The notes under the pieces were generated by a model. It was not told the origin of the DNA. It saw only the letters and a list, made by a program, of their open reading frames with translations, and made no database searches. The translations under genes and the position numbers were made by a program. DNA of 64,000 bases, taken from contig OZ316897.1 of NCBI GenBank assembly GCA_973895155.1, positions 7,740,470-7,804,469 of the forward strand. The letters run 5' to 3'. Of the stretch, positions 3,368 through 43,200 are shown piece after piece; positions within the stretch are counted from its first letter, which is position 1, and each line of letters starts with the position of its first letter. Source of the stretch: Marsupella aquatica. Taxonomy: Eukaryota; Plantae; Marchantiophyta.

Positions 3368-4770
3368 GTTTGAGATCAGGCCGTGGAGGGACCCCAGGCC
3401 GTGGGGGGACACCAGGCCGTGGAGGGACACCTAGTAGCGCTTCAGGGAGTACCAAGGCAGGAGACAACAACAAATTTGGTAAAGTAGAAGTGAATTCTGA
3501 TGGTTGGATAACTCCCACATGTGATGGTAAGAACCGTTGGCATTCTGACCTAAGAGGAGAAGTATTGCGTTGGTTAGATTTGAGCATTACAGAGTTTAGG
3601 AGTCAGAACAAAGCTGATTGGGCTGCTATCTGCAAGGACATTCTTGAACGGTGGGACTATGTTGGTAATGATGGTAAGGGCCCAGTTGAAGATTACATAT
3701 CAGATTATGCAATGAGGATTTTGAAACAAGAGAGGCATAGGTTGAAAAGGATGTGGATAGACAATGGTTCTAACAGGAGAATGCCACCACCCCCATCATT
3801 GGAACTGGATCAATGGACACGGTTAATCAAAAGGTTCATGTCGGAGGCTGGACAGAGCAAGAGTGAACTGATGTCAAATGCTCGAGGCAAAGTGAAACAC
3901 CTTTCACAGGCTGGGAGAGGAAGTTATGCTCCAGTGAAAGAACAATTGGTAAGGCAGTGACATGCCTGATAGTAAGCCTCAAACTTATCATCTTGCTACC
4001 ATTATTACATTTTCATTGACAATCAACACTTGGTTTCATTCATATGTATGTTGATGTGGACTGCAGAAGAAATTGACAGGTGAAGAACCATCAGCATAAG
4101 AAGTGAGAGAGGAGTTCATGAAACAAAGGAGTGAGGTGACAAGTGTGACTTCCAAATAGGTGATTATGTTGTAATTCTGTATGTTCTGTGACTATTTGGC
4201 CTTGAGTATCAGAAAGAAATGTAGTAGGAAGTAAGCAACCAGTTCTTGGAGACAATTATCTGAGATATGTAAGTTGTGTTATGACAAGGAACTGTTACAA
4301 CTCTCACAGAGATGTGTGAACGGTTGAAGTCATTAGAGTGTGAACTCCCTCGAGTGGAAACAAAATTGGCTGATCATTTGGATATTGTGGAGGCATCTGT
4401 AGCGAACCTTCTGGCATCAGTGGAATCTAATTTCAAGCTTGTGATTGAAAAATTGGGTGGTTCCCAACCAAACAATGAGGGCAACATTGTACAAAGTGTG
4501 CCCTTGTTAACAAAAAAGGGAATTGGCAAATCTGACATGGGTATGGAAATGACACCGGCCCATTGTTCATTTTGTCCTATGTTCAAATGTTAGAAGTAAG
4601 TTTTCATGAATTGAGTGAATGGTTTGAATGCAGGAAGAGTGGAGGCAGAGAAGGACCCTGTAATCAGTAAGCAGAAGGGCAAGAAGGTTGCTGAAACAAG
4701 TAACCTGCTATGATCCAGTATGAATCATTTGAAAAGTGCATGCATGGAGTTTGTGAAGCTTAAGCATCTT
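3368..4770 (+). pseudogene. CACTA (En/Spm) accessory 'Transposase_24/TnpA-like' gene remnant
   Basis: The 196-aa ORF ends PPPSLELDQWTRLIKRF...SKSELMSNARGKV...AGRGSYA, as in Ptta/En/Spm proteins, with a GT donor at ~3949. The next putative exon (~4067-4135) carries an in-frame stop. Confidence 0.7.
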
Positions 4771-5987
4771 CTCATCATCTTCGTGAGGGGGAGCGCAATT
4801 TTAGCAAAATCTTTAATGAACCGGCAATAATACCCTACGCAGCCCAAGAAGGAACGTACCGCCTTTTGATCTATGGGGAACACAACCGCCACCTCAATAC
4901 CCCATTGGGACACACGATGCCAGAGTAGTGCTCCCTCCTCTACCCCAAAAAAACATTTGGCAGGATGTAGCTTGAGATTAACCTCTCGGCATCGTTGTAG
5001 CGTACGCCATAGACGTTTGGGGTGCATGGCAACAGTCCCAAAGATGGCGAAGTCGTCAATAAATATTTCCATAAATTCCCATAGGAAATCATGGAAGATA
5101 TTCATCATGAGTCGCTGAAACATGGCCGGGGCGTTACACAACCCAAATGGCATTCTCCGAAATGCGAATGTCCCCCATTCCATAGTGAACGTTGTTTTAA
5201 GCTGATCTGCGAGGCGGATCCAGATTTGATTATAGCCCGAATACCCGTCAAGGAACGTATAAATTTTGTTTCGAGCTACCATATCCAGAACCATATCTGT
5301 GAATGGTAACGGGTAGTGGTCTTTTCGGGTAGCGTCGTTCAACTTACGATAGTCCTGATAGATGCGGATTTTAAGTTTTCCGTCCGTTCCTCCCTTCTTT
5401 GGCACAATGACGATAGGGGACACCCAATCACTAGCCATCACCGAGTAGATGATATCCACGGCTAGGAGACGATCAATCTCTTCTTTTACCAAGATGGAAT
5501 ATCTCGGGTTCATGCAATACTGGCGCTATCATACAACGTGCGCTCCTAAGTTCAAATCAATCGTATGTTCTCCTAACCCCGGGGAGACTCCAGTCAAGTC
5601 ATGATGGCTCCATGCAAACACATCTTCATACTCCTTAAGTAGTGATTGGATAGATTTCTCTGCCGAGCCTGTTAAGGCGTGACCTAAGTTGAAAGTCTTA
5701 TCCATCCCAATGGTATACTTCCTGTAGTGTTCTTTCCTTACGACCTCCACTTGGTTCCGCAAGCTAGGGTCCAGGCTAGCATCTAGCTCCGCCAGGCAAA
5801 CTCCTCTGTACATTGGTGCGGTCGGGATCGGCTCCGGGGTCAAGACTACTTCTTCTTCTGGCGGAATGGAAGGATCCCAAGACACTCGTTTCTTGTGCTT
5901 GGTTGCCGGAATTTTGGTTTTGGTCGACGGGCTGGTAGGCCCATGACTAGGTGATTTGGCACTCGTCATTAGGAGTCCCCAGTTCCT
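4770..5987 (-). pseudogene. Ty3/Gypsy reverse transcriptase fragment without LTRs, embedded in the CACTA remnant
   Basis: LLKEYEDVFAW, WVSPIVIVPKK, DYRKLNDATRKDHYPLP, FLDGYSGYNQI, MPFGLCNAPA, IFIDDF and VRSFLGCVGYY. There is a stop at ~5529 and both ends are truncated. Confidence 0.93.
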
Positions 5988-6889
5988 ATGTTTGAGATCA
6001 GGCCGTGGAGGGACCCCAGGCCGTGGGGGGACACCAGGCCGTGGAGGGACACCTAGTAGCGCTTCAGGGAGTACCAAGGCAGGAGACAACAACAAATTTG
6101 GTAAAGTAGAAGTGAATTCTGATGGTTGGATAACTCCCACATGTAATTGTAAGAACCGTTGGCTGATCATTTGGATATAATGTAACAAACTGGTTAATCT
6201 CAAACTGGCTCAAACTGGCTCAAACTGGCTCAAACATATGCTGACACACATGTGCACTCGCAGCCCCATGGAACCTAGGCCAATAGACCTGTCTTGTATG
6301 CTTGCAACTGTACAAAAGATTGCCCCAATTGCTTTCCACATAAGAATCAAAACAGTGGACCTGCTGGAGTGGCAGGTCTGGGCGATACAAGGTGCAAGTT
6401 TTGCGTTGCAATCATGATGAAACTTTAGCCGTGCATCTGATCTGAGCTGTCACTTGGCTTTTTTCGGGGAGTAAAGTTAGGGGAGCTTTCCCTTTTTGCA
6501 AAAAACTTCTCCTGGTACCAGACTACCAGCCCTGCTGGCCCTCTGGCCACCATGACCTTTGGTCCACATGGGTGCCAATTCCCTTTGTGGGCCAGCCTAT
6601 GTTTTATTTTAATTTATTATATGTTGGCTTTTTGAATTAAATGAATTGGCTTTTTCTAGCAAAAAACACAACTCCTCAATCTTCAGTCCTCATGTTGCTG
6701 CTGCAATAGAGCTCATAATAAAGTTTGTTCTCAAATAAAGGTTGAAAGATCATCTTGCGCAAAGTAGATGGAAACAATCAACCATCATATTGTCTCACGC
6801 GATGTGATAAGGTAATTATGCTTTGCTGTGTGCGACTATACGTTACTTGCCATCCATTCAATAGGGCATCTCAAAAAACATTTATTACA

Positions 6890-9136: not shown

Positions 9137-9361
9137 ACAAAAGTTTTACTTTAGTAAAGAATAAATTATCATAGAAGAGATTATAATGTAAGAGTGAGAG
9201 AAAAGCTTAGCACAAAAGTTATACTTTAATAAAGAATAAATTATCATGGAAGAGATTATAAGGTAAGAGTGAGACAAAAGCTTAGCACAAAAGTTATAAT
9301 TTAGTAAAGAATAAATTATCATGGAAGAGATTATAATGTAAGAATAAGAGAAAAGCTTAGC
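9137..9361. repeat. Tandem repeat, 3 x 75 bp
   Basis: The unit acaaaagttatactttagtaaagaataaattatcat...aaaagcttagc starts at 9137, 9212 and 9287. Confidence 0.95.
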
Positions 9362-22915: not shown

Positions 22916-23325
22916 TATTGAGCACGTGTATGTTTGGAGTGTTCTTCCTGATCTGATTTCTCTCCACAATTGGTATCAGAGCTCAGGTTTTCAGTCGATT
23001 AGGAACTCCATAGAACTTGCTTCAAGCAAAGCGAACAGCGGATGATTTCCTCTTCGAAGCGGAGCTATTGAAAGAAGATCGGACTCAATCTTCTCACAAG
23101 TGTGGAGCACACAACCAGGGGCTCATTTCAGTGAAGCAATGAAGGCCTGAGGTCAGAAACGGAAACAATTGTAAGTGACGGTTTTCAATTTACGTTATCA
23201 GGCAAGAGATAAGGACCAACTCTTCAACTAGGGTTTACTCTAACCCCAGTTAACATACTAACCATAGTTCAACCCAAGACTGAGTTAACCTCTACAAACT
23301 CCCCCTTGACTCATGTCTTGGAAGG

Positions 23326-24349
23326 CACCACACTTCTTGCCGAAGTCAATTTGGTCACATCTCAGGAGGAGAAAATCAATTTATGGCATGCTCGGTTTGG
23401 TCACATGAGTGAAAAAAGTTTGGAAATCCTACACAAGCGACATCTTCTACCAGGATTGCAAGCATGCAAGTTGAGTTTTTGTGATCATTGCATTGTCGGC
23501 AAGAAAACAAGAACTTCATTTTCGACTGTCATTCATCATTCTAAAGTTGTACTTGAGTATATTCATTCCGACGTGTGGGGTCCTGCTTCGGTTTCCTCAC
23601 ATTCAGGCAAACAATACTATGTATCGTTTATCGATGATTACTCAAGGTTTGTTTGGATTTATTTCATTGCCCATAAGTTTGAAGTGTTTTCCATCTTCAA
23701 ACAATGGGTAGCTCAAGTTGAGACACAGACTGCAAAGAATGTGAGATATCTACGATCAGATAATGGTGGTGAATACACCTCTGGCGAGTTCAACACGTAT
23801 TGTGCAAATAAGGGAATTACTCACCATCTCACAACTGTGTACACTCCTGAGCAAAATGGTGTTGCTGAGCGACTCAACCGCACATTGTTGGAGCGAGCAA
23901 GGAGCATGTTGAGCCACTCTAAATTGCCACAAATCTTTTGGGCGAAAGCTGTCAACATAGCTGCTTATCTCGTAAATCTCTCTCCTAGTCGGGCAATTAT
24001 TTACAAAACCCCCTTTGAGCTATGGCACAATCGACCTGCTGATTATTCAAAGCTTAAGGTTTTTGGCTGTAAAGCATATGCACATGTTCCTAGCAACAAT
24101 AGGACTAAGCTAGATCCTAGAGCCCAAAAATGCATTTTTCTTGGTTATCAGCGTGACGTTAAAGGATATCGATTGTGGGATCCAGTTGATTGCAAGTTAC
24201 TTGTTAGTCGGGATGTATCCTTCAATGAAGACAAATCATTGAAGGAGGGGGAGATAGATCAATTCCCTACTACTAACAAAGTGCAATCTCCTCCTCTAGA
24301 GGATTTAAGAGGAGAGGATGTGTCAAATAAAGAATATGTTGACACTACT
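23326..24349 (+). pseudogene. Copia pol, GAG-pre-integrase + integrase portion
   Basis: LWHARFGHMSEK, CDHCIVGK, YIHSDVWGP, FIDDYSR, LRSDNGGEY, PEQNGVAER and KGYRLWDP. It is interrupted by a solo LTR at 24350. Confidence 0.95.
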
Positions 24350-26126
24350 TGTAGTATCACACTAGGGACAAAAATAAACATTTAAGATCCAAAACTCGGT
24401 ATTCGTTCCCATGGAAGAACATGTAAGGAATGATTTTCTATGATTTAGCACTTATGAATGAATAAGGTAACAAAAACACAAAGGTTGAGCCTTTTACTAT
24501 GGTTGCTCAGCAAGGCATAGTTTTAAATGTCTGCTTGACATTGTAAATAAAATTAACAAATGGAAACAATTAATAAAACACAATGAAAACCTTGAGGTAT
24601 GGTGAGGGCGTTAGGAAACAACCAAGGTGACTCCTCAACATAACTTCATTTGATATGATTTAGGTGGTATATCCGCAAGAACATTTCTGGAAAGGATTAC
24701 GATACTAGGATGATTACTAAAATACCGTCAACATGTCTCAACTTTTCCTTCCAAGGTACTGAGTGGAGACTAGTAATCAATCACTTCTGTATCCAATCGG
24801 TACTTTCTGTCACAAATAAGAGACACCATCATAATCAAATTTGAAGCCATAAGTAATTGATAAGTAACAATCTTTGCATCCCGTGCACAAGCAATGTCAC
24901 GTCAAAAACTATGCATCAAGAACTAAGGAATATGTAGAACATCACCAGCAAGGAATCTATTTCCACATACTCAAAAGATTTAACAATCACAATAATTTTA
25001 CTTCAAGGGTCCAAACTTCTCATTCATTTAGACTTGAAGGGGGAAGAATTTCTTTGTATTAAGTACTCATATGCAATGGAGTGCTTGCTACAAATGGAGG
25101 TAACAAAGTTGCAATCTTGCAACTGAGCGCTCATGAAATTTCTTCACACTAAAAGTGACAGAAATTCAAGTACATATAGGGTGGCAGGAACTAAAGAGAA
25201 AAGAGATAATGAAAGGACATGCCCTTTCATATCTTAAGGGTCATAAACTAAAGTAAAAAGTATGAAAATATGCTACAAGAGTACTCAAGGTTGAGTAGAA
25301 TGCTCCTGGAATCAAAAACTAACTAAAAGTTATCCCTAGTGTAAACTGGAGTAAAAGTGTTTTTACACTTTTGTGATAAAACTAATAAATAGTGAGTTTA
25401 TTGGAATTTTAATTTCTAACATAAAAGTCAAAATGGGGTGAAACTTTCCTAGGTGGAAGATTTATATACATGTTACATGCTGGCAAAATTTTAGACTTTT
25501 CTGAGGTGTCTAAGTGCCTTAATAAAATAGTTGAAAAGTGCTGTAGGATAAACAAAATACATTTTCCGGAAATTTTTCTAAGTGTTGGAGGCGCCGTTGC
25601 GCCTTTGCGCTTTGGAGCACTAGCGCCTTTGCGCCTTTGCGCAATTACGCTTAAGCAAAACTAAAAATGCTATAACTTCTAAAGTATATGTCAGTTTCGG
25701 TCGATACTTTCAGGGTATGGTCTACTATGTAAGGGCTATCTCCTGAAAAAGTATGAGACTTTTCTAACTACTTTAGCTATTTAATTAAAATTGCACAGAT
25801 CGATTGATCTTAACTATTGTCGTAGGAGAACTAATCTTGTTGGAGTAGTGTTGTCTGGTCTGGTTGCTGAACTCTTGTGTAGGTATTCTCTCGCATAGCT
25901 TCTTGAATTTCATCCATGTCTTGAGTGTGATGCCGATAGAAAGGTAAAGACTTCCGTTGTCGTTCAAGATCCAGAACAGGAAGTAGTCTTCGGTGTAGCA
26001 TGGTATTAGGTAAAGTGTTCAGTTGATCTAAATTGCTACAAAAGGTAGCTATACTGCACCTTTGACTTAGAAAAAGTTCAAAATTTATAATTTTTTAATT
26101 ATTTCTAACTAATGTACTATATTACA
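24350..26126. mobile_element. Solo LTR (1777 bp) of another LTR retrotransposon family inserted in the Copia IN-RT linker; TSD CTACT
   Basis: Begins TGTAGTAT and ends ATATTACA (imperfect terminal inverted repeat). It is flanked by CTACT at 24345-24349 and 26127-26131 and has no substantial ORF. Removal restores ...EYVDTTVRQSTLQSDQPESSVRRG... Confidence 0.9.
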
Positions 26127-31621: not shown

Positions 31622-33648
31622 ACCGCGCAATTTGTCAAAGCATCTTAAGATGGTCTATGAGAGATCCTAAATCCAACTTCAAGTGGCCATTTTCAAAAAA
31701 TGAATGTCTCACAAGTAATATTAGAAACTTCACAATGGAAAACTAATGTCAACCTTGAAAACCTTCACCCCTGGTAAGGGGCTTGAAGAAAATTCATGTT
31801 TTCAAAAAGTGGCTCTCTCACAATCACTCTCATAGTCTCCATCATTGGATTTTTGTTTTCATGATCACAGTAATTTATTTCAATTATCATGTCAAGTTTT
31901 TGAATTCCGATATTTGCCTGTGTGGTTGGAGAGTCAATTATCTTAGCTAGTTTTTGAATTTGGGTATTTGTCTGTGTGTGGAACTGTTACCCTTCTAGAG
32001 CCTCACTAACTTGGGAACTTAATTTCCATTGACACTTTTTTAATCTACAGAACGTTCCTTATGAAAACCCATATCTTAAGGTAAGAAAATCTATTTTTTT
32101 GGTTAATAACACTCATTTTCCACACTCTTCTTTGCAGCTATCAGATCCTAATCAGTAGCTATCAACACTAATCAGGGTCAAGTGATCCCTAATAGATGCT
32201 TTAGCCTTCAAGATTATAGAGCTCTCCGCACCTCCAAATGCTCTACTGTTGGATGTGAAATAAACTTTCCAAAATTGATCCCACACAAGAGTAAATGTGG
32301 CGGAGCTCTCAAATCCCTAATAAATACTCTAGCCCTCCATTACTAGAGAGCTTTCACCTCTAGATGCTCTATAATAATATGTTGGACAAAACATTTAAAC
32401 CACCACTCGGGGTATAAAGCCCCCCTCCAGCCTGCCCGTGCGTACGGACCACTCTGCCCAAGTCGGGCACAGTGCAGGGCGCCCCAGCCTCGCCCGTTGC
32501 TCACAGGGCCATTGCAGCGCCCCCGGCCTCCATGCAGCGCCCCTCCCAGCCCTAGCACTGCTGCTGTTACGAGCCCCTGTGCTACGAGCCCCTGTGTTAC
32601 AGTGCTACTGTGAGCTGCTGGTCCGAGCCACTGCTGCAAGGAGGCAAGACCTGCTGCTGCCATAGCCAGCTGCGAGCTCCCAACCGATGCTGCTCATCCC
32701 GCTCGCCTCCGGCTCAACTTGCTTGCCACCTGCTTGCCTGATTGTCAACTTGCTGCTACCGTTTCAAGCTCCCAAGATTTTGTGGCTGCCATAGCCAGCT
32801 GCCCCTCGCCTGCTCCTCGACTTGCTTGAAGCCTCGCTGCTCGACCTCCTCGCTTGCTGCTCGACCTCCTCGCTTGTTGCTCACCTGATTCTCGACTAGC
32901 TGCCACCGCTTTGAGCTCTCAAGACTTCATGGCTGCCATAGCCAGCTGCTTGCCTGCTGCTCAACTCGCTGCCAACCGAGCTACTTGCCTGCTGTTGAAC
33001 TTGCTCGCCTGCTGCTCCTCCCACTCCTTGGCTACTGCTCGACTCGCTGCCATAGCATGGGGAAACAAAGCAGCTCGCCTTGCTGCCAATCTTGGCATAC
33101 TTTGTGACTGCCATAGCTTTGATCCTGTTTGCTCATCGTTTTCTTACTTCATTTTGTCTCGATTTCATTTCAGCTCAATTTGTGGGCAGAAGTGCTGTTG
33201 TTTCTTGCCCTTCTGCTTGCCCGGAAGATGCAGAGCCTGTGCTGCCATTTGTGAGCATTGCTTGTGTTCATTCCGGGGTTCATTTGATTCTACTGTGGCC
33301 TGGGTGGAGTTCCTGGTGCAATACTCTACTCGGATTTTGGCTGGAGTTGAGGCTGCGATTGATCCTAATCAATTTTTGCTCAGGTTTGTGCTTCATTTCT
33401 TTTGCTATTGCTGCCATTTTTGTTCATAGAATTTCAGCAGCAAGTTGCTGCAATTTCAGTTTCTCATATGTCTATGTTGCGCTCTCTGTTGTGAGGATTT
33501 CAGTTGTTGCAAGTGCTGTGAGAGTTTTCGGTGTTGATCCTGCTATTTTTGCCGTGACAACAGGGTGTCATTTTCAATTTACATTCTTTGCTAATGTTGG
33601 GCAAGAGCAGCAAGTGACATTGAATGTGATTGTTCTTGTGTCAGGAAG

Positions 33649-34047
33649 ATGGCACCGACTAGAAAATTGAGAGCCATGTTGACTGAAAATGGCAATGGGA
33701 TCTACAATTTGACCTGGCAGGATCCTAGTGATGTTGAGGGCACTCCACCCACTGTCCGGACTGTCACTCTGCAAGAGGTCCTTGCTGATTTTCCAGATTT
33801 TTGTACCGCAATTACAGAGTGTCACAGTGATCTCAACCCTGTAGTCCCAATTGAACAGTTGATCATGTGCGCTGCATATAGTTATGTTGAAACTGTCATG
33901 AGAAGGAAGAGATACCAAGTCTACACTCACTTGGCCTACGTAGCAGGGTATGCCGAGAGAACTAAGTTTCCTGAACCTGTTGAAGCTTCTGTGAAAGCAA
34001 CTTGGCATGATGAAGGAGAGGAATTCGTAGGATTCCTTGCTAATTAG
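33649..34047 (+). CDS. KolX-like accessory protein (P2X7 C-terminal ballast/nanor-like motif), 132 aa, convergent with the transposase
   Basis: The C-terminus RRKRYQVYTHLAYVAGYAERTKFPEPVEASVKATWHDEGEEFVGF fits the RYxxY...GxxxRxxxPxxVxxx(I/V)xxx(F/W)x(D/E)xxxx(Y/F)xGF pattern of KolX/P2RX7-C domains. A splice-acceptor-like gtgtcag lies just upstream of the ATG (~33644). Confidence 0.65.
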   Translation: MAPTRKLRAMLTENGNGIYNLTWQDPSDVEGTPPTVRTVTLQEVLADFPDFCTAITECHSDLNPVVPIEQLIMCAAYSYVETVMRRKRYQVYTHLAYVAGYAERTKFPEPVEASVKATWHDEGEEFVGFLAN

Positions 34048-35104
34048 GGATAGAGTGGCTTCTACCATACTTCATGTTTTTCTTTCAATGTTTGATATGA
34101 CTAATAAAGTTTTTTGCAGAATACAACTCCTGCTGGTTGGCGGCATAAGGGGTTCAATTCCCCTTGGGAGTACATGTTACATCAACACAATAACAAATTT
34201 GCATGAGAAATACTTTGTTCTATCTTACTTACATTCTCCCTAGCTTGTATATTATCTTCATTTCTTCTTTCCCAAATGTCGCATTTCTCAAAAGTTGGTA
34301 GTATATCGTACAACACAAGAAAGGTCCTCCTCCAGTCTATTGTGCATGTCGACCAAACTACTTTTCTCACCAAACACTAAGTGTTTCATGTTCAAACTGC
34401 AAGATTTCCTTGTAGTGATGGGTCATTGGGGTCGGCACCCTGAAAATTTGCCTCATTGTAGTCTCTAAAATGGCACTCTATAGTCTATGAAATGACACCC
34501 ATAAAATTTTGCTCATTTCTCTAAAATGACACTCTGAAATATGAAATATTGTTCCACCACAATAAACACTTCACATTTGTTTGACCACAACAAGAACTTC
34601 ATAGTTACAAGATCAGTCACAAAATAACACCAAAAAGACAAAATAAAAATTTCCAATGTTCATAGCTCTCATATGAGAGTCAAAAGCTCCATCCATAGCT
34701 CTTGCCTTCAGTCCCAACACTACTGGTGCGAGGTCATCATTTTTCTAGTCAGGTCTCGGCCCTCCTCAAGAGAATCACCCCTACAACAATGACAACCATT
34801 TTAGAGGTAGTTACACAATGACAACCATTTTACAGCCATTGAAATGATATCTATTTCAATGAACTAATTTTATTATTTGTCTATACTCACATGAAGTATG
34901 TTAGCCGAGGTCTTTTATGGAGGGTTGGCACCACTCCATAAGTACACTGACAACTATGTTCACCATGTCTCAACCCTCCTGCATAAATCTCCCACAAAAT
35001 TGTACATTATAATATTAATAATTGTCATCAACATCGATCTAGCAATATGCTTACATTGCCACTTGTAAAAGACAATTAGCTCATCACATTACTTTACCTT
35101 GGTT

Positions 35105-38100
35105 CTAAGATGGAGGTGGAACTCCATAAATACGCTCACTCGTTCGGTCCTTCCAATTAGTGGTCCGGTCCACCAACACTCGAGTTCGACCAGGACGCTC
35201 TCTAATAGCAGTATTCACGGGCGTGCGATGGTAGACCTTCCATACATGTCGGCGGATATTCTCATTCCAATCAAGGGCAGCACAACACAAGCGAGCCTCA
35301 TGAGTAGCCGAGAAATGAATACGCTTGATGGCATACTTGCCCATCACAGAGTGATAGGTCTCTGACATGAAGTTCTCCCGAGCCATCGTATAAAACCTCA
35401 TCTTGGAAGGAGTAATATACTTCTTCATGAACTTTTGCATGGCCAAGTGAGTCTCGCCACCTACATGCACAAAACCCACTGACATTGTGAATAATGGGAC
35501 CCAACAATAACACCCAAATGATATCAGGACAACTATAGTAAGTCACATTCATTTGTACCTCGCTCATAATAACGGTCAACCTGGATGGCTCCAGGGTCTC
35601 CAAGATGCTGACAAGGTCTATCCGATAGTCTTGCACATAATGCATGATCGCCAGCCCAATGATCGGCACAATTTCCCAACTCAAAGGCCAACGACTCTGC
35701 ATCTCCCCCACTGCCAAACAAAGAAATACTCAAAACTCTATTATAAATGCTACTACACTTCAACCCATATGACAACAATTACACATAAAATGCAAAATTC
35801 AAGAAGTCACACCATGCATAAAAAGTTCACATACCTGGTCCTACAGCGTCGACAACATACATAGAACCATGTCTTCAATTTTGTGGCCAAGTTATGCTGA
35901 GATAACTCTGGATACTTTTGACCGCGAGTCTGAATGTGTGCTAGCTCCTCATCAGGTAACCCACGCATGTCAGCAACTTTGTGGACCAGTCCCTCCTTCC
36001 TAAGGGTGGAGTACCCTCTCACTCCCTGTGCTTTCAACCAATCTTGCAACTTTTTAGCAGTAACCGCTTGGAGCTGAGAACGAGATGTGGCAGTATCGAT
36101 GTCAATAGTAATAGTGTATGTGACGCTCACCATCTTCTCCACAAACTTTTTGACCAGGTTCTTAGCCTTATGCCATAGGTCTTTATGGTTCCTAATCCCC
36201 ATATCCTCCACAATATTATCAATAGTGGCTTTATCATCATGGATAACCTCTGTGATAGATATCCCTGCCTCTCTCAAACTATCCAATGCCTTTTTGGTAC
36301 CCCTGTCCTCCATGTACCAGGCATTTCTCTCCTCTCGCCGAGTAATTGTGACCATCTCAATTACTCTATTATCTTCAGTGTTGAGGATAGAGGTGGTACC
36401 GTCAAACCACACACAAGTACTAAGAATAAAATTTTAGGAGAAATTGCATCATGATACTAGAAATTTATGACTGGTCTTCTAGGGGAACTAACTTACTAAC
36501 CTGTCTCAGTCGTCCGTCGATGCTGAAGCTGGTCCTTCAGCTGCTCCCATAGATGATTTTTGTCTTCCTTCCACTCTTGCTTCACAGCTGCTATCCATCC
36601 ACCTTGGGGTCGCCCACGACCACTCTGAAAATCATGCCAATGACCCGCAGTAGGGACATGTAATCCTAGGTGCGAGGTAACAGAAGCCAAGGATGTGTAG
36701 GTCAATCCGGAGCAAAGGGTAGAATGATATAACTTGGGAGTAATCATGGGGGAACTCCTCCCTGGCTCATTGTCACCTGTAACAAAGGTCCAACCATGTC
36801 CATCCACACCACAACCAATGCAAATTGACCATAACTGATGCAACTCCCTAACACGCTCAACTATCGGAGTCCTCAAACATCCCTGTACATGACATCGAGG
36901 GAGTAGCCGATCAACAAACGTAACCAGTAAATGGCGATCAAAAAACCCTACTGTAGCTGGCCGACGGGGTGGTGCTCTATGAGTCGGCTGAGAGTCCGGA
37001 ACTGGAGTGGGCTGAGAGTCCAGAACTGGAGCCGGCTGAGAGTCCGGAACTGGAGTGGGCTGAGAGTCCGAAACTGGAGCCGAGTGAGATTCCGGAACGG
37101 GAGATGGCTGAATGTCTGGAATTGGAGATGCCTCCTGATATAATAAATCCACAATCTTATGTCAATAATTATTTTTGATTTTTCTACAAAGTTTTTGAAA
37201 AGGTGACGGTCATGAAAGATCTCATACCTGAAAGGTATCCCCATCCACAATGTCCAAGGCCCCTAGAGCTGCAAGAGCAACTGGGTCATCATCTTGATAA
37301 AGAGCGTCATCCTCCGCATCTGAGGCATATTGCTCCGCAATATGTTCCTCCAAGACCTCATCCTCTACTCTATCTGAATCCCCTGCCTCATGTTGGGCAG
37401 TCTGCAAATAGTACAAAGGTGAAGTTTAGCAATGAATAGAACCCTAAAAGGTTACTAAACCCTAAAGTTGTAAAGTACCAAATTATGAGCAACACCCATA
37501 TGTTTGAGTTGTGAAAAATATTGTAGTAATAATATGACTGTGGTAACCCTAAAACATATGAAATTTTTTTATTCATGTGTTGGGGTTTCTTACAACAAAA
37601 CAAACCCTAACTTTGGCAAACCCTAAACTGTTGGTATTTATTAGTAATGACATATTTTCATGGATGTGAGTTAGGTGAGTATATAGGGGCTCGTTACAAA
37701 ACATAATTATAACTTAGCAAAACTATGCTCAATTGTCATAATCCAACCCTAAACCATAAAATGGTGAAATTGAAGGAAGGGGACTGTTGGCCGAAATAAA
37801 ATAGGAACACATGGATACATATATGAATGACACCATAAAAGAGACAATTGTACCTGAAGTGGTGGGCGTGAAGGCTGGCCACGGTCATGCTCAGCTGCGG
37901 CTGGAGGTGCTTCGTCCCCGGGTTCGTCCCCCATCAATTGAGTGGCCTCCGCTATACGCCATGCACGGAGTTCCTCAACCCCAGGTCGTGAGTGATCTAG
38001 TAACCATGTGACCACAGTAGAATGCGTGGTATCTGGTCCAAGCAAAGCTCTAAGGTCCTCCCACTCATCCCACCGCTCAAGTGGGACCCGGATTTCTGGC

Positions 38101-38234
38101 TTGGCATCCGGTCTCCGTCTCTTCTTATAATCTATATCATCACTCGGATACCGTCGCCTGGGTGGACCACCCCCTCGTTGGGGACGTTTCCGCCTCCCAT
38201 CCAGAAGATTGGGGGGGCGCCCCCCTGTGCTCAT
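35105..38234 (-). CDS. Kolobok-type DDE transposase, spliced: exons 38234-37854, 37401-37228, 37134-36497, 36419-35835, 35710-35559, 35460-35105
   Basis: In-frame GT-AG splicing gives a C-x4-C...C-x4-H-x-W Zn-finger-like region (LPRCHVQGC..CGVDGHGWTF) and STLCSGLTY. It also gives VWFDG (putative D1), AWYMEDRG, EVIHDD (putative D2), DLWHKAK, NCADHWAGDHALC and SETYHSVMGKYAIKRIHF..ARLCCAALDWNENIRR (putative E). This motif order is the one I recall for Kolobok transposases. Confidence 0.8.
36981..37130 (-). repeat. 24-bp coding tandem repeat (~6 copies, SQP(T/A)PV(P/L)D) inside transposase exon 3
   Basis: Repeated ggctgagagtccggaactggag units; the translation reads PVSDSQPTPVPDSQPAPVLDSQPTPVPDSQPT. 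Confidence 0.9.
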
Positions 38235-40221
38235 ACTGTCCTATCCTAACACCACCCTGTGAAAATGTACCTAAAACCTAAAAATAAAACCTTACAGATG
38301 AGAACTAGAGACCGGATGCCAAGCCCAACCCGGTGAACAAACACAAAATTACACAAAACAATGCAAAGTCAAAAATGGAGAGGAAGAAAAGGAAGGAGCA
38401 CTAGACCTCTTGGAGTCCACTTGTGAGTATGACACCCCAACCCTCCCCCCCCCCCGTCCCTCCCTCCTCCGTTGTCCTCCCCACCTCCCCTCCACGGCTG
38501 ATCACCTTGGCTGGAACAGAAACCCTAATCCCATGCTCTGGCCGCCACATTTTTGACCCCGTAGAGGGGACTTTCCCAAAAAACAATGTCATATGAACTG
38601 CAAGGATTCGAACTCAGGACCTCCTGGGTGGAAGGCAGGGGTTTGGACCATCATGCTAAGGGAGATATTCGAAGTTGCAGATTCCTAAACTGTATATGAG
38701 CTAGTAGGCTGCGCCTCAGCCCTGGCCACTTCCCTGTTCTCCCGGCCTGCACCCCGCTTTCTCCCCTGGCACCCGACACTTTGTCACACCAGGTGTCCCC
38801 TGCCCGGCCTGCCCGTAAATTTGAATTTCAAATTTACCTCCCCACCCAATCAGAAGCCCCCGTTTGTTTTTCAGTATTTTCTCGTTCATTTTGGATCATT
38901 TTCTAGTGCGGATTTTTCTGGGACGTAGATCTCAGCGAGATCTTCAAAATGAGCCGTAGATCGTTCAGTTTCATGGGCGGATGAGATTATGGCAGCGGTC
39001 GATCGGAGGGCTACCGATGGGTGCCCGTCCGCACTCGCGAGCATGCGGTTTCTGGAGTGAGTACTCCGGGTCACCCGGAGTACTTATATTACGAATTGTG
39101 GTTTAAACAAAATATTTTGAAAACTCCAAGAGTTGGACAAAACATTTAAACAAAACCTCAGGAAAAATATTTTGGAAATGACACCAATTATTGTTATTTC
39201 CAGATCAAATTCACATAAATTAGTGTGACTAGCACTAATTTAAATATAACACTAATTCTGGTATAACAATAATAACGGTGTCCTGTGTAGCTATGCAGAA
39301 TGTTCGAGATGGGTCCTTCAGTATCGAGATTGTTTTGATGGGTCTTGTAGTATCAAGAAGTGCAAACACATCTGAGAGGTGTAGAGCAGTTAGGCAGAAC
39401 GTTGTGAGATGCGTCCGTCGAATCAGTAAAACTGTAAACAGGTATTGGAAGGACACCGGTCTGCTTATCAAGGGCTTCGAGTCTCGAAGGGGAATATCTG
39501 CTGAATGCAGGACATTGCGAAGTTTGGGCTTGAATGGGCAATGATAGCTCTCCCACATTAGGTCAGTGCCCTACTCCTATCCAAGAGTATTACTCAAGCC
39601 GCTCAAGCCTCGCCGCGAAGGCCGTCAACAAGGTTCCAAGGCAGAACATCGTCAAGACAAGGCCCAAATGAAGGAGACTGCACCGATGGAGATCAAAAAA
39701 TGATATTTATCTTTATTGCAATTATATGATACACCTCTTAGACGAATCACAGGGAATTAAGAAGATCAACGCACCTCCCGTTCTCCATAACCAAAAGGCC
39801 TACACCGTGAAATGATACCACTGGAGATACAATTCTGTGGGCAGGTCTTGCCGTCATCCCCACCATGGGACCCTAGAAAATGGTTCTAGTAAATGACAGC
39901 TCCAATAATGCAACAGTGCAAAGCTAGCCTTCGCTTCAAAGTCCCTTGCACCCAAATGGATCAATCTCCTGGTCAACATCAGTTCATTGGTAGAATCCTT
40001 CGACGTTCACTGACAGATAAAATCCACTGCCATTTAGGCCAGGTAACTGCATCCACTACTTGTAAGAACTCTCCCTCATAAGGGAGCTTCCTTGGCTCCC
40101 CATCAAAGCTCCCGAACTCGAGACTTACCAACGTTTCCTCGAACAACTACACGACTTGCCATTTCTAATATGCCCCTATCTATTTCCTTACGAGCTTTCT
40201 TGCTCCTTGAAAGGAAACACA

Positions 40222-43200
40222 TCACTCACACTTAATGGATCGGTAGATGTGACGGACAAACAAAAGGGATGCTCTGAATCCAATAGTACCCAACATGAGG
40301 AAAAATCCAAGGCACACACAACCCATGTACCCAAAAAAGTAGGATGTCTGCATGAACCCGCTCATCTCCGATCGAGCGAAGTAGAAGTAAAAGCAATAGC
40401 CAAAGACAAACAAACCAGTCGAACCACCACAGAGCACGGACCTGCAAACCAAAACATATCTCGTGTTAAGCAACCCTAAATTATCTTAACAAGGAACATC
40501 AAGGGGCATGAATTACAAATTACAGAGGAAACAAATTGGAAAAACATCATAGCAGCAAGTTCGGCAACCACAGAAACCACACAAGCCAAGCAAAATCGAG
40601 GCTAGCAGACTTCTATAACATTTCACGAAAAGAAGGGAAAAGGGCAGTCAGAGAACAAGAATAAATTAATTTCTTTACCTCCACCACCAGCGATGGTCTT
40701 CCACTGCAAGCTGGAAATAGGTCAGGGCAATAGTGATGAACGCCGTCACTATGATGAGAATGATGAATACAATGAATAGAATACTGGCGATGATGTACAC
40801 CGTATGGCCCCAGATGCTAGCAAAGATGTAGTACAACTCGATGTAGATAGCACTGAATGGCAGAAATCCAGCCATTGCCATTTGTGGCACAGTGCGTCTA
40901 TACCAAGGCAGTGCTGGAATCTCTCGAGGATACTTGGTCGTTCTACAAGGAGCCTGAAACTCAGCTTTGCTATTCTTTCCGGCAATTCCCCCGAAGATAA
41001 GCAGTGGCGAGCTGACCAAAGTCCAGATCAGGAGGATCACGCAAATGGTTCCAAAAGGGAGAGCAGCGTTAGCTGCGTAGAATATAGCAACCGTGTTGAG
41101 GAAGGAGAAAGCCAAAAATAGTGGCCCCATGAAGAGGGCAGCAGTAAGGAGAATATTTCGAACCTGACAGAGCACCATCGATTAGCAGTTGCCTTAACTC
41201 AAGTAGAGACCGCAATGTAACCATAGGAAAATCTTGCAACAGAGTAGAAGACTCATCAAGACTACAGCAAAGAAGAGACTCATCCAAGAATAAGGGGACT
41301 TCCACGCTTCTAAAAATTCCAGTAATGCAGAGAGAGATCAACACCCTCTAACTCATTGGAGAAACACAGCCTAAAAAGCATTGGAACGTCTTTGCTTGAA
41401 TGATCTGCTGACACTAAGCAAGGTGAAATATAAAACCTACATGATGGTCATTCAGTCTCATTTTATAATGCTCTCTATCGAAGGGGTGAATGAGTGAGAA
41501 TTTATTGCAATGCAAATATATGTGCAGACGTAGCGCGCTGTGAGGCCCCACTAAATGCTAGTAGAGAACGCTTGCACTGAACTTTGAAGTTGAAATTCTC
41601 ATACTAATGCGTCTGAATGAAAGACCAAAGAACTCACCCAGTTGTGTCCATCAAGCATTTTGTAGAATGACGCAGCAGTATACCCAGCTATTCCAGAGGT
41701 AAGGGCATAAATCACAACAAGAGCTGTGTAGAGCGAGCCTCGGTTGTAAGGGTAGAAGACACCGACTAGGGCCAGTAGAAAGATGGCCAGTGCCCTGCAC
41801 AGTTATTCCCAATATATCAAATTCTGTCGTCAGACCACTGAAACAGTAAACCATGACACATGCTGGTTTTGAAAAAATAATGACAACACATGCTTACACC
41901 TTGGACCTACATGAACAAATTCACACATGTATGTCGAAGGTAAAGTATCACTCACAAGGCCAGAAGCTGCGTGCCAGTTCCGAGAACAGCACAGAACAAA
42001 GATTTATATGGTGGATATCTGAACACATCCCCATGAATGTACTTCCAGCCCGTTTCTTCTTGATCGTCTAGTGCCTCTTCATCTCTCGAATATCTTCACA
42101 TCACAGGATAAATAACTGATAAGTAGCGACGGACAAAAATAACTGTCAATACAACGACTTCTTGTAGAGGATCGACCTACAACGTCGGAAACAGTATGAA
42201 GTATCTCACAGTTCCACAAACCAATAGAAGACTAAACACACTTACTTGATGAAGTCATTCTTCAACACTCGCATGAGAATGGTTGCAAGAAATCCCGTAA
42301 GAAGCAATACGGTTACGCAAGAGTTGATGATGGAGAACCAGTGAATCTCTAGATGCTGTGGCAGAATTGAGTTCTCAATGTATTTTTCCATCCTCCGTTC
42401 GAATGGAATATCTACTTTGACCCATTTCGCGGAGTACGTAAATTCAACCTCCTGCTCTTTATCCTCTGTAATATCCTTAGAGTATTTTACCTCGGGGGTC
42501 ACTTTGATCTCTATAACTCTATCCCCATTGTAAGAAATGTCGAAATGGGCGTGAGTAAATAGAGTATATTTGCTGTCATCCTCGAGTTTCCCGATGAATC
42601 CCCAGATAGGGAGGTCATCGTAATACATCTGGAAATAATAATCATCCTTGATTGCTGCACGAAACTTTGCCACATCATCCTTCGAAAGAGATGCCTTGCA
42701 GAGCACCTCATATCCCTTGTCCACCAGAAAGTTAAGTTCATAACGGGCATGCACCAAACGGTCCCCATTGAGAACCTCTCCTAAGTCCTCTCTCTTTTCG
42801 TTGTAGTTATCTGCGCAAAAAAAAACTTTTCGCGTAACTAAAAATGAACAACTTAGCGGCCGAACAAATGTCAAGTGGCGTGGCCTGCATCAGGCTAAGG
42901 TTGTCGAGCATCCCAATTATCAGGACAATCTGATAGAGGCACAGTGTATCAGGAAATGAATGGAAAGTTACCTGGACGGCAAAATGGCAGGTCAAAGTAC
43001 CTGTACGTTTCACTGCATCACCACCACGTTCGCTCATATTAGCTTCATCTACACAAAACATCAACCGATATGACCAGCCACGACCATAATAAAAAAAGAC
43101 CGGGACTATGAAGTTTCAGAAGTAAAGAATGAACCCAAACATCCCATATATTTTGAAGGGAATTCGAGCTAGAGAATCTATTGTAATTTTTCTCCCGGTG

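Follow-up and report, generated by a model that had tools for sequence, protein, structure and literature searches.

The TTAA-flanked insertion

The 64,000-nt stretch of the liverwort Marsupella aquatica analysed here (contig OZ316897.1, positions 7,740,470 to 7,804,469; hereafter the window) carries an insertion of 6,704 bp (32399-39102) that is bounded by two copies of TTAA and contains a putative transposase gene and a small convergent partner gene (Table 1). An earlier model-made reading of the letters (hereafter the original prediction) had described it as an apparently complete, Kolobok-like transposon. Our analysis points to a genuine Kolobok-type element of a distinct lineage, present in the window as a defective copy that has lost the segment coding for its first catalytic aspartate (D1).

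The inverted ends of the insertion are imperfect and begin with ACCAC (ACCACCACTCGGGGTATAA versus ACCACAATTCGTAATATAA, 14 of 19 positions identical); with TTTAA included, the repeat search extends them to 24 nt at 79% identity. Of the 408 pairs flanked by TTAA near the genes, this one scores highest, its lead over an unrelated pair being one match, and the inverted repeat is weak evidence when taken alone. The reconstruction of the empty site provides a stronger internal control. The left junction reads ...GGACAAAACAT-TTAA-ACCACCACTCGGGGTATAA... and the right one ...TTATATTACGAATTGTGGT-TTAA-ACAAAATATT..., and joining the left flank, one TTAA and the right flank restores GTTGGACAAAACATTTAAACAAAA, 24 nt identical to the intact host repeat at 39132-39155 that stands 30 bp from the insertion site. 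From the window alone, the duplication can be read as anything from TTAA up to TTTAAAC; the copies found in related species settle this ambiguity and fix it as TTAA (see below). Three contigs of the public sequencing run X2 are common up to 39106 and then continue into different flanks. The TTAA on either side (32395-32398 and 39103-39106), the 19-bp imperfect terminal inverted repeats and the empty site that rebuilds a neighbouring host repeat had all been proposed in the original prediction, and all three were recovered here.

The insertion site itself (32381-32398 plus 39103-39166) lies within a short host tandem repeat with a period of ~43 bp, whose units start with GTTGGACAAAACATTTAAACAAAA. 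No inverted counterpart of the left subterminal repeats (32650-33117) was found at the right end of the element.

Gene content

The transposase gene could be mapped by tblastn with three intact homologues, P0012 (691 aa), P0006 (657 aa) and P0032 (891 aa), which cover a whole protein on the minus strand, from the N-terminal domain and a zinc finger to the core and the C-terminal block. All searches used either single exons or intact homologues. Six GT-AG exons free of stops (38234-37854, 37401-37228, 37155-36497, 36419-35835, 35710-35574 and 35478-35105) can be joined into a predicted protein of ~769 codons. The junction between exons 5 and 6 is in phase solely with a weak donor (C/GTTATT), the better-looking donor CAG/GTTGAC being out of phase. 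No intron-like joints were present in the short contigs obtained from four public runs, and none of the runs holding the stretch is recorded as RNA. The six-exon DDE transposase of the original prediction is retained as an open GT-AG model, but one whose last junction depends on that weak donor.

In exon 1, an N-terminal segment (38160-37975, minus strand; ...IRVPLERWDEWEDLRALLG...THSTVVTWLLD) is conserved in homologues from Riccia sorocarpa and from metagenomes and can be aligned to the sea-urchin protein P0123; with its strand-helix-helix pattern, it may be a DNA-binding domain of a ribbon-helix-helix-like kind. The exon that carries the SAP-like insert remains below Pfam significance in the window.

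The small gene lying tail to tail with the transposase in the original prediction corresponds to the 132-aa open reading frame (ORF) at 33649-34047 on the plus strand. Unlabelled Logan contigs contain homologues of the partner protein at 52-66% identity, in one case with the same tail-to-tail layout. Others, at 28-43% identity, lie inside the Riccia elements and, as two tandem copies, in Calypogeia fissa, always convergent with the transposase gene. At least 11 annotated 'hypothetical proteins' of Riccia belong to this family, and the partner gene is a conserved component of the liverwort elements. The two tandem copies of C. fissa (locus L011, 12418-12753 and 12881-13270, minus strand) lie in one decayed element, and one of them has an in-frame stop. 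A tblastn search with the partner protein on the element of the alga Chara braunii gave no match.

Table 1. Features of the Marsupella aquatica element (window coordinates) and ends of related elements (coordinates of the fetched loci)
Feature	Position	Strand	Basis and remarks
Left TTAA target-site duplication copy	32395..32398	.	exactly TTAA according to the Riccia copies
Left terminal inverted repeat, tip ACCACCACT	32399..32417	+	repeat search; same 9-mer in Riccia L006 and L009, ACCACCAGT in Chara L010
Left subterminal repeats, units of ~129/147 bp	32650..33117	+	repeat search; exact 18-mer GCTGCCATAGCCAGCTGC found 3 times versus 0.03 expected
Partner gene, single-exon 132-aa ATG ORF, convergent with transposase	33649..34047	+	ORF; homologues placed likewise in elements of Riccia and Calypogeia
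Transposase gene, six-exon model	35105..38234	-	stop TAG at 35107-35105; tblastn of P0012, P0006 and P0032
SAP-like helix-extended-helix insert between DLWH and zinc finger	35966..36061	-	aligns to homologues whose insert matches Pfam SAP
Deletion scar, residual 77-nt intron + 19 nt in place of the D1-coding block	36401..36496	-	comparison with homologues, sister contigs and Calypogeia
24-nt tandem repeats in exon 3, Pro/Ser/Gln-rich linker (PTPVPDSQ-like)	36957..37148	-	repeat search; six units
Right terminal inverted repeat	39084..39102	-	repeat search
Right TTAA duplication copy	39103..39106	.	sequence; three run X2 contigs diverge after 39106
Intact neighbouring copy of the host repeat split by the insertion	39132..39166	+	repeat search
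Riccia sorocarpa element L006	TTAA at 6876 and 15581		ends ACCACCACTAAC... and ACCACCACTACA...; tips ACCACCACT
Riccia sorocarpa element L007	TTAA at 9244 and 14700		inverted repeat 18/20, ACCCCCAGTATGAC
Riccia sorocarpa element L009	left end only within fetched DNA		TTAA-ACCACCACTACC (TTAA + ACCACCACT); Copia further right
Chara braunii element L010	TTAA at 5464 and 22269		ACCACCAGTCCG and ACCAGCAGTCCG, 16/20, starting ACCACCAGT

Loss of the first catalytic aspartate block

The block hhhD[ACGT]R[FYW]DS[ST]R.G[FY]HGT contains the first catalytic Asp in 36 homologues, whose hosts range from Chara to sea urchin. The splice reading of the window has exon 3 ending in ...QHRRTTETG, then a 77-nt intron, then exon 4 starting with YTCVWFDGTTSILN. 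Because the FDGT of this exon aligns to the FHGT of the homologues, which follows the block, the D1 block is gone from the window copy. Sister contigs from runs X2-X4 match the window up to 36400 and then code, on the reverse complement, for RWDSSRSGFH; the two sister variants of the block differ by three bases, all of them synonymous, and intact sister copies exist in the same species. At the Calypogeia fissa locus L011, an intron of ~300 nt is followed by ...PGLVVYLDAQWDSSRNGFHGTISVIN / ...VVYLDAQWDSSRNGFHGT, whereas in the window GTTSILN comes only ~100 nt after exon 3. Riccia (L005) and Calypogeia agree in the position of the intron that immediately precedes the D1 block. It follows from the comparison with Calypogeia, the sister copies and Riccia that the deletion took ~15 codons together with the 3' part of this intron. 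The intron remnant still holds an AG, which keeps the reading frame open. The string SFSIDGRLRQ, located in another frame just before the exon 3 donor, was considered as a possible D1 block and rejected: it needs two frameshifts, no in-phase splice reaches it, and the deletion explains the region.

D1 is thus absent from the sole open splice model and the catalytic triad of the window copy is incomplete, which concerns the autonomy of this copy and not its place in the Kolobok superfamily. The original prediction, which called the element apparently complete with counterparts of all Kolobok motifs, has to be corrected on the first point, since the block present in sister copies and in Calypogeia is deleted here; on the second, the ME, HDD, DLWH, zinc-finger and SETYHS...KYAIKR...ARLCCAALDWNEN blocks are indeed intact and D1 is the exception. 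Judging from the missing conserved block, the transposase of the window copy is most likely inactive, and this copy is probably non-autonomous, that is, unable to move by itself.

At least two sequence variants without D1 are present among the reads (contigs over 36401-36570), and copies of this type look like an amplified non-autonomous subfamily. The reads of runs X2 and X3 also contain the joints 35381>38318 and 35478>37180, which are internally deleted non-autonomous derivatives from the same or a sister species.

Related elements share the target site and the tips

For the relatives, loci were fetched and every TTAA pair around each gene was scanned. In the Riccia elements L006 and L007, the bases inside and outside the TTAA differ, so that the duplication cannot be extended and is exactly 4 bp long. 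The scan yielded no TTAA-flanked inverted repeats around the genes of the Riccia loci L005 and L008, which are probably truncated copies. The Chara braunii locus harbours a TTAA-flanked element of 16.8 kb (L010, 5464-22272) with an ACCACCA tip and a 664-aa transposase relative inside.

A 4-bp TTAA duplication, as produced by Kolobok elements, was found in the window, in Riccia L006 and L007, in Chara L010 and in the diverging contigs; the 8-10-bp duplication that characterises MuDR/MULE elements was not, TTAA being present in all complete copies examined. Tips of the form ACC(A/C)CCA are common to the window element and to the Riccia and Chara copies. The family as such is characterised by TTAA and the ACC tip, and the recurrence of the tip supports the view that it marks a distinct lineage. 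The original prediction would, in its own terms, have been contradicted by other copies with different ends and duplications of 9-11 bp; the copies of Riccia and Chara instead display TTAA and ACC tips, in line with its suggestion that the ACC termini denote a subgroup.

Kinship of the transposase

Exon 4 alone (201 aa), used as a phmmer query on 1.84 billion representatives, yielded only 112 matches. The named ones come from the liverworts Riccia sorocarpa and Calypogeia fissa (at most 61% identity), from the streptophyte algae Chara braunii and Closterium, and from Pyramimonas and Prorocentrum; matches to sea urchin, amphioxus and tick proteins appear at E ~1e-4. The closest named relatives are those of C. 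fissa, with 72% DNA identity in the coding parts. None of the 30 matches whose sources were looked up originates from a vascular plant.

BLASTP connects the intact homologues to animal proteins that were recognised by the Kolobok motif GDGRxDSPG. P0012 matches the sea-urchin protein P0123 (E 9e-10 over 223 residues), whose D1 block GDGRNDSPGFCARY (motif GDGRNDSPGF) is nearly that of Kolobok-1_NV and Kolobok-1_PiPr, and P0032 matches P0113 (E 1e-12, and additionally 4e-5 in the C-terminal KYAPKR...AR...A.D.N block). Data S5 of Kojima and Bao (2022; PMC9587614) contains an alignment of Kolobok transposases. Read by eye, the blocks of our family are co-linear with it (DxRxDS, ME, D(R/D), DxWH..K, W..C, H..GDH..C...C and E..HS). 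For the window copy, the S/N-W-x-ME block has a counterpart in Data S5, HDD aligns to TDR, KDLWHKAK of exon 4 to DVWHxxK (with W and H invariant in the alignment of homologues), KTWFYVCC to HLWWCSQTC, CADHWAGDHALC...C to DHWRGDHSQC of Kolobok-1_CCri, and SETYHS to LESFHS. The zinc finger CADHWAGDHALCARLSDRPC, whose H and C are nearly invariant among the homologues, is encoded by exon 5. A zinc finger between the C/DxxH signature and the catalytic E is present in all Kolobok lineages except Kolobok1 and absent in MuDR, P and hAT (PMC9587614); the liverwort element has one in this very place. In a language-model Atlas, P0012 has 203-209 of 256 features in common with its neighbours, which are PF20700 clusters from chordates, molluscs, cnidarians (with THAP) and Parabasalia, and these groups are classical Kolobok hosts (Kojima and Bao, 2022; PMC9587614). 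Homology to Kolobok DDE transposases is thus indicated by BLASTP, by the Data S5 blocks and by the Atlas neighbours.

Pfam holds no Kolobok model. Among the 112 relatives, SAP was detected in 28, the 'Mutator-like transposase' family PF20700 in seven (near threshold) and MULE PF10551 in two (distant, animal or of unknown origin), while SWIM and DBD_Tnp_Mut were found in none. The window exons and the small ORF gave nothing relevant in Pfam; the MULE domain set has no match in the exons, and a piggyBac-type DDD transposase has none in either the exons or the homologues. UniRef labels the Riccia proteins 'SAP domain-containing'. The original prediction had anticipated that automated pipelines would call such an element 'Mutator-like'. 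Its relatives are in fact labelled either so or just 'SAP domain-containing', a correct forecast of a misleading name, since the PF20700 clusters come from classical Kolobok hosts; the label is misleading for Kolobok relatives. The signature blocks, the BLASTP matches to animal GDGRxDSPG proteins and the TTAA in relatives support a Kolobok-type element in a liverwort-like land-plant genome, as originally proposed.

The partner protein and KolX

The second protein of the Kol0 lineage of Kolobok, KolX, contains seven conserved zinc-binding Cys, binds two zinc ions and adopts the cytoplasmic-ballast fold (PMC9587614). In alignments, the partner family has no invariant Cys and lacks these seven cysteines. 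Its C-terminal ~80 residues are nonetheless co-linear with Figure S6 of the same paper (FC-x-A-IT / CIT, A-Y, R-T-x-LP / R-x-V-LP, terminal FVGF / YVGF). Two AF2 models of the family (pLDDT 80 and 85) superpose on residues 506-594 of rat P2X7 (PDB 6u9v) with a root-mean-square deviation of 2.9 Å over 68-69 residues; the Z scores of 4.0 and 3.5, ranks 17 and 35 of 48,161 chains, fall within the noise band stated for the tool.

Other searches with the partner protein returned little. Pfam gave no match, P2RX7_C included, even at E 10; PDB sequence and profile searches retrieved only chance formate-dehydrogenase matches; Foldseek against PDB gave nothing at E <= 0.001; the Atlas returned noise, with phage Gp6-like clusters at low recognition; and the profile search recovered proteins of liverworts and unlabelled ones from Logan, none of which leads on to P2RX7_C. 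The partner is therefore only weakly tied to KolX and the ballast domain of P2X7, and we consider true homology somewhat better than an even bet. The term 'KolX-like' in the original prediction agrees with the co-linear motifs and the low-Z P2X7 match, but not with the absence of a profile match and of the seven Cys.

Proposed organisation and alternative explanations

We favour, with a probability of about 0.8, the explanation that the insertion is a real Kolobok-type element of a distinct lineage, of which the window holds a defective copy lacking D1. The autonomous form of the family would consist of a convergent gene pair enclosed by short inverted repeats with ACC tips. Its intron-containing transposase would combine a helix-rich N-terminal domain and a C-C...C-H zinc finger with an RNase-H-like DDE core bearing DxWH and the SAP-like insert, with another zinc finger ahead of the catalytic Glu; the second component would be the small partner protein of ~130 aa. 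The transposase would bind the ends, excise the element and reinsert it at TTAA. In the window copy, the deletion would have removed the 3' part of the pre-core intron and the first ~15 codons of the core exon, including the D1 Asp block, and this copy could be mobilised only by transposase supplied by intact sister copies.

Several points weigh against this explanation. The link to named Kolobok families passes through a published alignment read by eye and through animal proteins picked by motif, and the Pfam matches are to PF20700 'Mutator', at or below threshold, and to MULE in two distant relatives. The termini do not conform to the 5'-RR...YY-3' that Kojima and Bao describe as usual for Kolobok, a trait on which the transposase-based classification is not founded, the tips of the window, Riccia and Chara elements being 5'-AC...GT-3', which we read as a lineage trait. 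All splice sites of the transposase are predictions from the DNA sequence. The proposed inactivity is deduced from a missing block, and the Asp of VWFDG lies near the right place.

That last residue is the basis of an improbable alternative, in which the window copy is autonomous and its 769-aa protein active, with the VWFDG Asp as first catalytic residue and a shortened beta1-beta2 loop. A stop-free GT-AG model, the integrity of all other catalytic and zinc-binding blocks and the presence of the D1-less structure in at least two read variants would fit an active protein. However, FDGT aligns in every homologue to the FHGT that comes after the D1 block, the 36 homologues, from Chara to sea urchin, retain DxRxDS[ST]R, and the sister copies preserve D1 with synonymous change only; moreover, amplification is common among non-autonomous deletion derivatives, and exons 5 and 6 depend on the weak donor. 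A Mutator-like (MuDR/MULE) element with coincidental TTAA flanks is very unlikely and already largely refuted. The duplication is exactly TTAA, not 8-10 bp, in four complete elements and one half-element from three species, the inverted repeats are short, and among the 112 matches there is no SWIM, DBD_Tnp_Mut, plant MULE or FAR1. Against this, PF20700 is the nearest Pfam family of the relatives and PF10551 matches two distant ones, but the PF20700 clusters stem from classical Kolobok host groups; the C/DxxH signature is common to Kolobok and MuDR, and the zinc finger between DxxH and the catalytic E is absent in MuDR (Kojima and Bao; PMC9587614). A piggyBac-type or other TTAA-inserting element with a KolX-like gene shares the TTAA duplication, but we give it a negligible chance: no piggyBac transposase domain was detected by Pfam in window exons or homologues, and the catalytic layout is DDE with DxWH and a zinc finger. 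The tips of piggyBac are CCC...GGG, and those of our element ACC...GGT. A few piggyBac families do encode KolX (Kojima and Bao; PMC9587614).

Regarding the history of this Kolobok-type family, the original prediction had left the choice between long residence and an old horizontal acquisition. Long residence in streptophytes appears plausible and is favoured because of the presence of relatives in Chara and Closterium, the common tip and the common intron position; relatives are also known in Riccia and Calypogeia, which have the intron upstream of D1 at the same position. The family may also have been transferred horizontally. A more specific scenario, which we regard as possible but doubtful, is an old Kolobok lineage extending over streptophytes from Chara to liverworts that kept TTAA and the ACCACCA tip, gained a SAP insert in its core and carries a cysteine-free KolX relative.

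Significance and neighbouring features

Kolobok hosts comprise animals, fungi, chlorophytes, rhodophytes and protists, with chlorophytes and rhodophytes as the only ones among plants (Kojima and Bao, 2022; PMC9587614). Our search of full-text literature on Kolobok with liverwort, Marchantia or land plants, which did not extend to Repbase, found no characterised land-plant element and only an unverified automated count in spinach. At the level of the locus the result is modest, i.e., one defective copy of a multi-copy family. The family as a whole brings land plants and the algae related to them into the range of the Kolobok superfamily, and bryophyte repeat annotation is liable to misfile its genes under 'SAP domain-containing' or 'Mutator-like'. 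It also makes it possible to test whether a plant transposon protein is linked to the KolX/P2X7 ballast family; if the homology of the partner to KolX is true, the P2X7 ballast domain belongs to a transposon protein family that is older than the plant-animal split and can function without zinc. TTAA-specific transposases such as piggyBac are prized for scar-free excision. In the scenario of an old streptophyte-wide lineage, the intact sister copies would encode a plant-native TTAA-specific transposase, and an active one could serve plant genome engineering.

Outside the element, two exons of a host gene of the EMP70/transmembrane-9 superfamily (40675-42874, minus strand; Pfam E 5e-60 and 1e-53) lie 1.6 kb from its right end. 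The window also contains ORFs of other elements, namely a Copia-type integrase ORF (23306-24385, plus strand; gag_pre-integrs, rve and SH3_retrovirus) and a reverse-transcriptase ORF (4725-5513, minus strand).

Comparison with known systems

The closest parallels are with the Kol0 group of Kolobok (Kolobok-1_XT, -1_BF and -1_NV; Kapitonov and Jurka; PMC9587614). Both produce the TTAA duplication and have a two-protein layout with a DDE transposase and a small second protein; both exhibit a DxRxDSxx-type D1 block, in our case in the intact relatives, and the ME, D(R/D), DxWH..K, W..C, zinc finger before the catalytic E, and E..HS blocks. The C-terminal KYAPKR...AR...A.D.N block is shared between the liverwort family and the animal relatives P0113 and P0123. 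Our element differs from Kol0 in its liverwort host and charophyte relatives, its tips (AC...GT versus RR...YY), the SAP-like insert in the core, the D1 block of its family (DSSR versus DSPG), a partner protein without the seven KolX Cys and plant-type introns, as well as in the loss of D1 from the window copy. Kolobok-1_CCri of the red alga Chondrus crispus (Data S5 of PMC9587614) resembles it at the start of the zinc finger (DHWRGDHSQC versus DHWAGDHALC here), but has a D1 block of the DGAWSHGR type and a RecQ helicase in place of the small partner gene.

The partner protein, like KolX, which is related to the P2X7 cytoplasmic ballast domain and to zebrafish Nanor, is encoded next to a Kolobok transposase, and its C-terminal ~80 aa are co-linear with KolX and the ballast domain (C-x-IT, A-Y, R-x-x-LP and a terminal (F/Y)VG(F/Y)); it differs in the absence of the WCxCxxC, ExxCC and PSC cysteines and in an N-terminal part that forms a three-stranded sheet instead of a Cys-rich region. 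With MuDR/MULE elements, the liverwort family has in common the RNase-H-like DDE core, the C/DxxH signature and the 'Mutator-like' database names of its relatives, and it departs from them by TTAA instead of 8-10 bp, short inverted repeats, a zinc finger between DxxH and E, and the absence of SWIM and MuDR DNA-binding domains. The likeness to piggyBac is confined to the TTAA target, the transposase being unrelated and the tips different.

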